Below, piece by piece: positions 60,501 to 64,000 of a stretch of DNA of 64,000 bases. This DNA is from Selaginella moellendorffii (lineage: Eukaryota > Plantae > Lycopodiophyta). Each line of letters begins with the position of its first letter. Position 1 is the first letter of the stretch. Both the position numbers and the translations under genes were made by a program. A model generated the notes under the pieces. The model did no database searches and was not told the DNA's origin. It saw only the letters and a list, made by a program, of their open reading frames with translations. The DNA lies in the NCBI RefSeq assembly GCF_000143415.4, contig NW_003314276.1, positions 2,355,072 to 2,419,071 of the forward strand. The letters run 5' to 3'.

Positions 60501-61557
60501 TACGGCTTCTGCTTCTTTGCACTCTACAACTTCTATGCCCTCTGCATCTGGTATGGAGGAACACTACTGGTAGCAAGAAGAATAACCTTCCAGAATTTTG
60601 TGATCTGCTACAGCGCTCTGGTGTCCGCCGGGCGAGCACTAGCAGAGACCGCAGGAGCAACTCCAGCAGTGGCTCATGGCTTGACAGCAAAAGCATCGGT
60701 CCTCGAGATACTCAACAAGAAAACAGCAGTTTCCGACGTAGAAATGTCTGGAAACGAAGACAACATGCGAGGCGAGGTGGAGTTTCGCGACGTCAGCTTT
60801 ACGTATCCCTCGAGCATGGAAATACTGGTGTTAAAGAACTTCAGCATTAAAGTGGACGCAGGCCAGACTGCAGCATTGGTTGGAAGGAGCGGGACGGGAA
60901 AATCGACAGTCATAGCTCTGCTGGAGAGATTCTACGAACCAACAGCAGGCACAATTCTCCTAGACGGCAAAGACATGAGGAGCATCCACGTTCACACGCT
61001 CAGGAAACAAATGGCACTGGTAAACCAGGAGCCAGCTTTGTTCGCGATGAGCATCAGAGACAACATAGCGTATGGCCTAGACAACGCGACGGACGCGGAG
61101 ATCATCGAAGCAGCAAGCGTAGCAAACGCACACACATTCATCAGGTACCAAAGAACTCTCCAAGAAAACTCTCTAAAGATGGATGCATGGCAGTGCTCTC
61201 CCGGAGGGATACGAAACAAATGCCGGCGAAGGAGGCGTCCTTCTCTCCGGAGGACAAAAGCAACGCATAGCAATCGCTCGAGCAGTGATGAAAAAGCCAG
61301 CGATTCTTCTCCTGGACGAAGCAACAAGCGCTCTCGACGGTGAGTCCGAGCGCACCGTCCAGCAAGCCCTGGACAAGATCGTGCACGGCAGCACGGCAAA
61401 GACGACGATCATCGTCGTCGCTCACAGGCTCTCGACGATCCAACACGCAGATCTCATCGCAGTGATGGAGAATGGCGGGGTTTCGGAACAGGGCAAGCAT
61501 CAAGAGCTCCTGGCCAAGAATGGCCGATATTTCGCTCTGATCCACTCTCAGCTCTAG
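57520..61557 (+). CDS. Full-size ABCB (MDR/P-glycoprotein) transporter, multi-exon
   Basis: TMD-NBD-TMD-NBD layout. Walker [10 protein letters not shown] / GRSGTGKST, signatures [14 protein letters not shown] / [14 protein letters not shown], Walker [11 protein letters not shown]. Short GT-AG introns, e.g. 57703-57771. Confidence 0.93.
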
Positions 61558-61709
61558 CAATCGAGGAGACGATCGATCCAAACGTACCTAGACATGCTAG
61601 CGCCTTGCCGCCTTGCCGCATTGCCGCCATAAACCCTAAGTAGCTACATTGTGATAGAGATTGATACATATCATCGTTACTCGTTAGGGAGCTATATACT
61701 TCTTCCATT

Positions 61710-62149
61710 CTATCGAGCGTGAGGCTTCCAGCACGAAGACATCTCTTTGACATGCGACGAGTAGGGGTCCTCGGGACCATTTGGAACGTCTCGATCGGGC
61801 TTGGCGACCACCGCCGGAGGATCATTCGATGATGGAGCGGTCTGGAAGTCTCTCCCGCCGCAGCCGCTCGTCCTGTGCTTCATCCGGTACTGCTCCGGAT
61901 CGTCAGGGCCGGATGGAGCCTCTCTTTCGGGATTGGAAACCAGCTTCCTCGACTGGATTGGTCCTGCACCAAGAGAGAACAGCCACACTCGTTAGTATCT
62001 CGGATCATCTCGAGAAAAAATCGAATTTTTTTCTTCTTTTTTTGCTCTGGAACGAACGAACCTCCTCCAACGCAGCGAGTCATGAGTGGAAAAAGCAGGA
62101 GGAGGATGATAGCCACAACACGGTGGCTGCTTTTGGCGGATGGAGTCAT
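61710..62149 (-). CDS. Predicted 113-aa secreted peptide precursor with two CLE-like motifs (exons 62149-62062 and 61963-61710)
   Basis: Exon 1 encodes the signal-peptide-like MTPSAKSSHRVVAIILLLLFPLMTRCVGG. A 98-bp GT-AG intron with a TACTAAC branch point joins it in frame to GPIQSRKLV...REAPSGPDDPEQY...RDVPNGPEDPYSSH. Confidence 0.75.
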
Positions 62150-62758
62150 GGCTTTGGCAGTGATGATGGCCAAAGAAACAGCACAGGAGCTAGCTTAATG
62201 ATTCGAAGCACAGCACAAGTTACACAGAGCAAAGCATCATTCACACCTCCAAGCACAGCGTCACAGAAAAAAAAAGGAAAAAAGAATCACAGAAAATGGA
62301 GGAGCAGAATCATACAACTCTACACTTAAAAACCACTCAACTCTCGTCCAACGATCGACAAAGATCTCTCTAGAACACAAGCAGACCTCAACAAAACGGC
62401 CGTTTGCCACTCCCACTCCACAAAGATCCCGCAAGAACACGCCGTATAAATACCCGAGCGACGATGAGACCTTTGCTCGAGGTACTAATCCGTGCTTGGT
62501 TTCTTCGTTTCTTCCTCTTTCGTGTCTTGTCTTGTCCATCTTTTTAACACACACTTACACACACACAGCGCACAAAGCCTTTTGTTTCCAATTCCAACAC
62601 GGCCAGACAGACACACACAGAAAGATGGAACACAGCTTTTGCATTCATTCCTGATTTGAGAGCTCTCTCGTTTAACGCATGAGGGATGGATTTAACGGAA
62701 CGAATTGGGCAATCAAAGCACAGAATCGTTGGAAGAATAGAAGGAGTCACAGACAAAA

Positions 62759-62808
62759 TGGTGGCGGTGGTGGCGGTGGCGGCGGTGGTGGTGGCGGTGG
62801 CGGTGGCG
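62759..62808 (+). repeat. (GGY)n trinucleotide repeat
   Basis: About 16 GGT/GGC units. Confidence 0.9.
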
Positions 62809-63698
62809 AAGTTTTGGTGGTGGCGAGCAACGTAGCAGCTTTCCAGGCAGACAAAACTTACAGGAAAGAAAAGCTCGCTCCTGCAGAGGAGACAAGCCTC
62901 CACAGATTCCAAATGATTCCTGCCCGGAGCTTGCGAGCCTGCTTGGCTTGGATACAAAAAATCCCACTCGCATCCCACTATAACAAAAAAAAGCCAGTAA
63001 CGATCAAAGAAGAACATTTCATGGCTTGTGGAAAGCCTACAAAAGCAAGACAACCAACTTGTTTTTTTCTAATGTTGTGTCGTGTGGCTTCTTTTGGAGA
63101 ATCAATGTCTCTCGTAGATTCTACTGCGGAAACTCCTTGTTTAATCCCCGCAATGTTTTTCTGTGAGGCAATGGCATGGAATCTCTGGGGCGAGGAGATC
63201 GATGCGTGCTGTCTGTCTGCCTGCCTCTCTGTGTCGAGTTGCTTGCATTATGCTCGAGATCCATGGCGTTGCTCGCCGTGAATTCTTGCGAAGAACAAAC
63301 CTTTGCTCCCGGACTTGTTGATGGGTGTTTGTATGATTCTCGTGGAAACACTACTAAACAATGGGGAATTTGAAAGCACAATCCAAGGATTCCCTATGAT
63401 TGAGCTCACGTTCCACCCGTCTTTATCACTTGGACTGTTCAACAGCCAAAGTTTCTTCCATATTCCAAAGTTCTCTTCCATCTTTCTTGTCGATTTTTGG
63501 TACTCTAGAACTACCAACAATGTCGTGACATAAGCTGGTGCTATATTATAATTTTTCAAAAGTCATTATATACATATTTCAGAAGTTCCAAAATTGAATT
63601 TTTTTTCCCTTTTTTTCTTTCGAATCTTCTTTTGCCTGGCATATTCCCAAAATGTAAAGGACGAGAAAAAAACGGAGAATGAAGCTCGTTTTTTTTTT

Positions 63699-64000
63699 TC
63701 AGTTCAAATCGGGAATGAGCATGGATGGAGGCGTCGATCTGTGATGTAAAGGATCAGGGCCCCCAGGAACATATCGATCCGGGTGGTCGATTTGATGAAC
63801 TTCGCGAACTTCACTGGATCGATTCACATTCACAAGTTTGCGATCATCACCCCCGTGGTGATTCTCAATTGCTACTGTTGCTGCTGCTGCTGCTGCTGCT
63901 GCTTGGTACTCGAGCATCTTTCTTCCCACGAGCTGATTGCTCTCCGGGTGATCCCTGCGTGGTCGCGGTGGGATCCTCTGGCAAGAAGAACTCGTTAGAG
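63699..64000 (-). CDS. CLE: CLE (CLAVATA3/ESR-related) peptide precursor; 5' end lies outside the window
   Basis: The frame is open to the window edge: LTSSSCQR...GRKML...HPD-RYVPGGPDPLHH-RSTPPSMLIPDLN*. The canonical 12-aa CLE motif is at 63741-63776. Confidence 0.88.
   Translation of the reverse strand, partial: LTSSSCQRIPPRPRRDHPESNQLVGRKMLEYQAAAAAAAATVAIENHHGGDDRKLVNVNRSSEVREVHQIDHPDRYVPGGPDPLHHRSTPPSMLIPDLN

Follow-up and report, generated by a model that had tools for sequence, protein, structure and literature searches.

Can a gene without a canonical CLE unit belong to the family of CLE peptides, the best-understood stem-cell signals of land plants? The question is raised by a locus of Selaginella moellendorffii on the minus strand at positions 61710–62149 of a 64-kb window (the whole stretch of DNA analysed here, to which all positions refer unless another record is named). 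An earlier note on this DNA described the locus as a hidden two-exon gene for a secreted product with two non-canonical CLE-like motifs (here repeats A and B), derived in tandem from a canonical CLE gene 1.6 kb away.

The sequence supports the proposed gene model in all its parts: exon and intron coordinates, branch point, and in-frame join are correct. In particular, the coding part of exon 1 (62062–62149, minus strand, ATG at 62149) comprises 29 codons, MTPSAKSSHRVVAIILLLLFPLMTRCVGG, and the first base of codon 30; the intron (61964–62061) has a length of 98 nt, is in phase 1, and begins with GT at 62061–62060, has a TACTAAC box, and closes with a CAG whose last base is 61964; and the coding part of exon 2 (61710–61963) encodes residues 30–113, with the stop codon at 61710–61712. 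The gene is not hidden, however, since its 113-aa product is already present in RefSeq as XP_024531451.1 (LOC112346529, "uncharacterized"), which was identified by a database match of exon 2 at 100% identity and is equal in sequence to the two-exon model. This RefSeq record was used as the sequence for all full-length analyses.

To assess transcription, we mapped four public runs from four studies as contigs over 60800–64000, an approach that reports presence only and gives no expression level. Contigs of X1, X6, and X7, from three studies, contain a joint that skips exactly 61964–62061 (CT..AC on the plus strand, equivalent to GT..AG on the minus strand), and the 62062/61963 junction that the earlier note had named as a check is therefore spliced exactly as predicted. 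That the mapped runs are RNA is our guess, supported by the removal of the intron of LOC112346529, by the removal in X6 of a 49-nt intron of a neighbouring ABCB-type transporter gene, and by the silence of the intergenic segment 62726–63581, with zero depth in all four runs. The contigs extend past the stop codon without a further joint; no downstream exon with a CLE unit was found, and the window contains no other CLE-like unit. By contig reach, the 5′ UTR spans 62150–62406 (X1 record 62072–62406; also X4 and X6) and the 3′ UTR spans 61588–61709. Weak X1 contigs extend the 5′ side to 62721, and contigs cannot fix the true transcript start. The 5′ UTR contains short upstream ORFs on the minus strand at 62230–62320 (MMLCSV and MILLLHFL, each followed by a stop codon). 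LOC112346529 is thus a real, spliced, and expressed small gene of S. moellendorffii, for a protein that is predicted to be secreted.

The predicted protein has the organization of a small precursor. The N-terminus is signal-peptide-like, as the earlier note had proposed, with two K/R residues in the n-region, an 11-residue core, VVAIILLLLFP, of mean Kyte–Doolittle value 3.24, a small-residue C-V-G-G region at −3/−1, and an AF2-predicted helix at residues 5–27. It is followed by an R-K-L-V site (61938–61949, residues 35–38) that fits the R-(R/K)-L-X preference of SBT6.1/S1P and that is conserved as SRKL (RKLL) in SmCLE7, the homologue described below, and as ARKL (ARKLL) in the neighbouring CLE precursor. 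SBT6.1/S1P prefers R-(R/K)-L-X or R-(R/K)-X-L, in the variable pro-region of its precursors; in CLEL precursors such a site serves as a Golgi pre-processing step, and CLE precursors are reported to contain sites of this kind as well (PMC7162652). Repeat A, taken with its prefix as PE-REAPSGPDDPEQY, spans 61887–61931 (residues 41–55; motif at 61887–61925), and repeat B with its prefix, PD-RDVPNGPEDPYSSH, occupies 61752–61799 (residues 85–100; motif at 61752–61793). The motif positions and the P-E or P-D that precedes each motif are as first described, and the neighbouring CLE motif is likewise preceded in a P-D-R context. Cys64 (61860–61862), invariant in the alignment with SmCLE7, lies between the repeats, and a tail, C107-W108-K-P-H-A-R (61713–61733), which shares its conserved C, W, and KPH with SmCLE7, ends the protein. 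With the signal peptide removed, LOC112346529 and SmCLE7 have exactly two cysteines each, both conserved and bracketing repeat B.

The protein is predicted to be mostly disordered (AF2 pLDDT 54 with a four-sequence alignment; Atlas model pLDDT 0.55), with the signal helix alone folded, as expected for a peptide precursor. Pfam returned no match for LOC112346529 and none for the neighbouring bona fide CLE precursor, and its silence is therefore uninformative. The ESM Atlas neighbours are unnamed plant clusters, and the similarity of 0.77 to IDL5 and RGF9 is in the chance range. Two other classes of peptide were considered and rejected. Specifically, tyrosine sulfation requires Asp-Tyr (PMC7162652), and a tyrosine-sulfated peptide of the PSK, PSY, RGF/CLEL, or CIF type was rejected because the protein contains no Asp-Tyr, its tyrosines being in Q-Y and P-Y contexts; the tyrosine of repeat B is a phenylalanine in SmCLE7. 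IDA/IDL peptides are Pro-rich 12-mers that have Pro at the centre and end in His-Asn or His-His (PMC8462819); no Pro-rich 12-mer with such an end is present in the protein, and a motif scan of the loci was negative.

An exhaustive phmmer search of 1.84 billion representatives identified SmCLE7 as the sole homologue (E = 7.5e-4 library-wide; pairwise BLASTP 3e-12). No relative outside S. moellendorffii was found by that search or by word-indexed protein searches with exon 2, with a four-sequence profile, and with the SmCLE7 N-terminal module, so that, for the databases searched, the evidence for conservation is that of a single paralogue pair. The SmCLE7 cluster comprises BAH56538.1 (UniProt C0STN5), which GenBank designates "CLAVATA3/endosperm surrounding region 7", and RefSeq XP_024543134.1 and XP_024527273.1, both of which carry the wrong name, "flocculation protein FLO11-like, partial", and are without exon 1. 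The name SmCLE7 reportedly goes back to Miwa et al. in 2009; the motif strings, locus names, and accession names had no match in the literature full texts searched. At the SmCLE7 locus (L001 9878–10025, scaffold GL377618.1), a signal-peptide exon, MALELHSLILFFFMALLCCYALESR, and a 72-nt phase-1 GT..AG intron lie directly upstream of the RefSeq models, and the intron is at the place homologous to that of the intron of LOC112346529. The GenBank entry BAH56538 begins at an internal Met and thereby cuts into the signal peptide. The two SmCLE7 haplotype proteins have lengths of 235 and 230 aa, the difference being located in the Ser/Pro-rich repeats, SSKDSIPVP-like sequences (L001 10310–10620) between the two-repeat module and the CLE unit.

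The two proteins share the same order of elements, namely, a signal-peptide exon, a phase-1 intron, SRKL, repeat A, Cys, repeat B, and CW..KPH, with 37–43% identity over about 90 residues. Repeat A (PE-REAPSGPDDPEQY in LOC112346529; PE-RLIPSGPSDPKQY in SmCLE7) has the common pattern R-x-x-PSGP-x-DP-x-QY, and repeat B (PD-RDVPNGPEDPY in LOC112346529; LE-REVPTGPEDPF in SmCLE7) has the common pattern R-[DE]-VP-x-GPEDP-[YF]. The proteins differ in what follows. SmCLE7 continues with six to seven Ser/Pro-rich repeats and a canonical C-terminal CLE unit, PE-RQVPSGADPIHH, whereas LOC112346529 ends two codons past KPH, before the region equivalent to the Ser/Pro-rich repeats and the CLE unit. The genes are on different scaffolds and have no neighbouring genes in common. 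The link to the CLE family that the earlier note had drawn from the motifs therefore holds by way of SmCLE7: the only homologue is the pro-region of a recognised CLE precursor, in which the same two motifs stand upstream of a canonical CLE unit, and the match is to that pro-region and not to the CLE domain.

Divergence between the two paralogues is concentrated outside the repeats. In the ten-residue repeat cores, 15 of 20 residues are identical, versus 19 of 57 elsewhere (75% versus 33%; Fisher p = 0.0017), and the NG86 dN/dS is 0.28/1.51 (about 0.18) in the repeats versus 0.71/1.08 (about 0.66) outside. With synonymous sites near saturation, this pattern requires that the repeats were preserved in both lineages over most of the period that followed duplication. 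The earlier note had held that motifs no better conserved than their flanks would speak against it; they are better conserved, in one paralogue pair rather than in orthologues. The second haplotype carries its own intact copy, LOC112342690, with V27L, I32V, L36M, A44T, and two synonymous changes. Repeat A of that haplotype reads RETPSGP, and the variant, at 61919, is also present in the RNA contigs; the haplotype differences in repeat B (61767 and 61797) are both synonymous. The haplotypes diverge by about 2% everywhere, and the four non-synonymous and two synonymous differences in the gene give no hint of constraint but are too few to show selection. Neither haplotype shows damage to the ORF, the splice sites, or the two cysteines.

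How the repeats relate to CLE units can be judged first from their occurrence. The pattern R..P.GP occurs three times in the six-frame translation of the 64-kb window, in the neighbouring CLE unit and in repeats A and B, and a loose 12-mer CLE pattern matches the neighbouring gene only. Repeats A and B are clearly related to each other: in LOC112346529 their comparison scores 60, versus 24.4 ± 5.0 for shuffled sequences (0 of 2000 shuffles reach the score), and in SmCLE7 likewise no shuffle of 2000 reaches the score. The resemblance to CLE units is fainter. The score is reached by 4 of 2000 shuffles for LOC112346529 against the CLE region of SmCLE7, by 15 of 2000 for LOC112346529 against the neighbouring CLE unit, and by 12 of 2000 for the SmCLE7 module against its own CLE unit (common Q-P-E-R-x-[IV]-P-S-G), versus 0 of 2000 (z about 9) for a positive control of CLE against CLE. 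The three repeat-versus-CLE comparisons are not independent and, with p about 0.002–0.008, indicate a short similarity of modest significance.

An alignment of six units defines what is common to them and what sets the repeats apart. R1, P4, G6, and the D and P are invariant, and an [ED] is present at −1 in six of six. In the four odd units, those of LOC112346529 and SmCLE7, a single residue (D, S, E, E) is inserted between Pro7 and Asp, which shifts the register after Gly6. The extra residue before the second proline that the earlier note had observed is thus present in both repeats, but it is not constantly acidic, being Ser in motif A of SmCLE7. The reported absence of the usual HH/HN end is borne out. 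Specifically, repeat A ends in x-Q-Y, and repeat B ends in YSSH in LOC112346529 versus FQRL in SmCLE7, such that the terminal His of repeat B is not conserved. The CLE motif is defined as 12–13 residues, [RH]-x-x-P-x-G-[PAS]-[DN]-P-x-x-[HNS], at or near the C-terminus, with His11 and His/Asn12, and its His-His or His-Asn end docks on two receptor arginines (PMC8462819). Because both repeats have one residue too many and neither has a conserved His-His or His-Asn end (His11 or His/Asn12), they are by definition not CLE peptides.

Comparison with known systems places the repeats close to CLE units without making them such. Like the canonical CLE peptides (CLV3, CLE40, and TDIF; 12–13 residues), they are contained in a precursor that is predicted to be secreted and have R1, P4, G6, P7, and a D-P pair, and their [ED]-R context is that of the two canonical CLE units examined in this genome. 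Unlike canonical CLE units, they lie within the protein and not at its C-terminus, and repeat B is enclosed by a conserved pair of cysteines; linear CLE peptides, to our knowledge, have no cysteines. Several CLE-type units per precursor, as in LOC112346529, are present in the multi-CLE-domain precursors of rice, wheat, and Medicago (CLE75, CLE76, CLE68, CLE30, and CLE31). In those precursors, the units are near-identical, of canonical length, and regularly spaced (PMC2254619), whereas the two units of LOC112346529 differ from each other and from CLE units, and the protein contains no canonical unit at all, which places it outside that class. Some multi-CLE units also lack the HN end, an example being rice CLE76, ...GPDPITSD (Oelkers et al. 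2008, PMC2254619). Other plants are also known to have multi-motif CLE precursors, as well as secondary motifs that are conserved ahead of the CLE unit (PMC2254619). Based on the shuffle results, the six-unit alignment, and the existence of multi-unit CLE precursors elsewhere, we interpret repeats A and B, with moderate confidence, as old, diverged intragenic copies of a CLE unit.

We consider it probable that LOC112346529 belongs to the CLE family as a truncated, lineage-specific gene that is paralogous to the N-terminal pro-region module of SmCLE7 and whose repeats are old CLE copies. An alternative, which we judge unlikely, is that the gene is an expressed remnant: a partial duplicate of a SmCLE7-like gene that is still transcribed and spliced, is without function, and drifts. 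The gene lacks the only part of SmCLE7 of a known activity type, no CLE-like unit is present downstream or elsewhere in the window, no relatives in other species appear in the databases searched, and four of the six haplotype changes are non-synonymous, all as a remnant would lead one to expect. Drift, however, fits poorly with repeat cores that are 75% identical, versus 33% elsewhere, at a synonymous divergence from SmCLE7 of >1, with the intact ORF, splice sites, and cysteines of both haplotypes, and with transcription in at least three studies, as compared with one of four runs for the neighbouring canonical CLE gene.

A more distant alternative is that the module is not derived from CLE units at all and is instead an independent Cys-bridged secreted domain, or a pro-domain that, for example, aids folding, trafficking, or processing of SmCLE7, in which R-x-x-P-x-G-P arose by chance or convergence. 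Conservation of the Cys pair, W108, and KPH outside the repeats would suit such a domain, as would the one-residue insertion, the lack of a conserved H11 and H12/N12, the restriction of loose 12-mer matches to the neighbouring gene, and p-values against CLE units of only 0.002–0.008; further, pro-regions with an SBT6.1 site matter for the secretion of CLEL precursors (PMC7162652). Chance or convergence would nevertheless have to account for the Q-P-E-R-x-[IV]-P-S-G that repeat A of SmCLE7 shares with the true CLE unit, for the [ED]-R at −1/1, P4, G6, and D-P common to six units, and for the physical location of the module within a CLE precursor, and other plants offer documented cases in which CLE units multiplied within a gene (PMC2254619). 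In addition, neither AF2 nor ESM predicts a fold for the supposed domain. We regard this alternative as quite improbable. A bolder proposal goes beyond descent and assigns the units a function of their own: the 13-residue R-x-x-P-x-G-P-x-D-P units would act as a lycophyte-specific, CLE-derived class of secreted signals, or would antagonize or modulate CLE receptors, SmCLE7 being a mixed precursor and LOC112346529 one dedicated to the elongated type. We put this forward tentatively and think it rather doubtful.

Under the preferred reading, a truncated CLE-family member with old CLE copies, a CLE unit of the form P[ED]-R-x-[VIA]-P-x-G-[PA]-(x)-D-P would have been copied intragenically to yield repeats A and B, which would have acquired an additional residue between Pro7 and Asp8 and no longer end in His-His or His-Asn. 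The protein would enter the ER, with the signal peptide probably cut around G28/G29; an SBT6.1/S1P-type subtilase could then pre-process R-K-L-V in the Golgi, by analogy with other plant peptide precursors, and prolines may be hydroxylated. The secreted product might be either two short Pro-rich peptides, excised before Arg, or a polypeptide of about 75 residues in which a C64–C107 bridge loops around repeat B. Given the conserved Cys pair, two free linear peptides may not be the right description of the unit, and, given the missing C-terminal His/Asn anchor, docking of the canonical CLE type is not expected. A modulating or distinct receptor interaction of the product is possible and is, at this stage, hypothetical.

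The module has significance at several levels. It belongs to what is usually dismissed as "variable pro-region", has been retained by two old paralogues, and stands alone in LOC112346529. If the 13-residue units are signals, SmCLE7 would release canonical and elongated peptides, and LOC112346529 would show that no canonical CLE unit is needed for the module to work. Should the elongated repeats be released and have activity, they would represent a natural case in which a CLE unit changed in length and lost its anchor to the receptor, with a bearing on ligand–receptor co-evolution in early vascular plants and on strict 12-mer motif scans. If they are inactive, annotation value remains: an "uncharacterized" RefSeq gene is tied to SmCLE7, and the RefSeq models of SmCLE7 are shown to be mis-named and to lack their first exon.

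The canonical CLE gene next door does not appear to be the direct source of LOC112346529. It lies 1.6 kb upstream on the same strand and encodes a 158-aa protein in three exons, of which the last (63699–63977, minus strand; CLE motif RYVPGGPDPLHH at 63741–63776) is in the window and exons 1 and 2 are beyond the window end. Its transcript was detected in one of four runs (X1), versus runs of at least three studies for LOC112346529, and a loose contig end at 63980 coincides with the end of its exon 2, confirming the splice. Like LOC112346529, the gene has a phase-1 intron after the signal-peptide exon, followed by ARKLL, and P-D-R before the motif; unlike it, the gene is split into three exons and encodes a true 12-mer, RYVPGGPDPLHH. 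Outside the CLE unit, its pro-region showed no similarity to LOC112346529 (160, 472, and 1111 of 2000 shuffles reach the score), and direct tandem descent is therefore not supported; the closest relative is SmCLE7, on another scaffold. The closeness of the two genes and their structure would fit a tandem origin of great age, which the sequence does not show. From the original proposal, then, a real spliced gene and the CLE link stand, and its hidden status, its tandem derivation, and a constant acidic insert do not. The neighbouring gene (window 63699–64000; L002 7855–8451) contains a poly-Ala (GCA)n run at 63865–63911, and its second exon encodes a CPGC pair and "PRNVPNF".

The DNA on either side of LOC112346529 has features of its own. 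Upstream, within the transcriptionally silent intergenic segment, a (CCN)n/(GGN)n run at 62756–62815 gives rise to spurious poly-Gly and poly-Pro ORFs on both strands. Downstream, the ABCB-type transporter gene (plus strand; window 61557–61617) converges on LOC112346529, and contigs of both transcripts share 61588–61617. This interval is a short repeat of the GGCAAGGCG type in which the haplotypes differ by an 8-nt indel; all contigs break at it, and the contig ends located there were rejected as transcript ends. The 49-nt GT..AG intron of the ABCB gene (window 61141–61191) is removed in X6 and retained in X1 and X4 contigs, a difference that may reflect either intron retention or the assembler's choice of contig.
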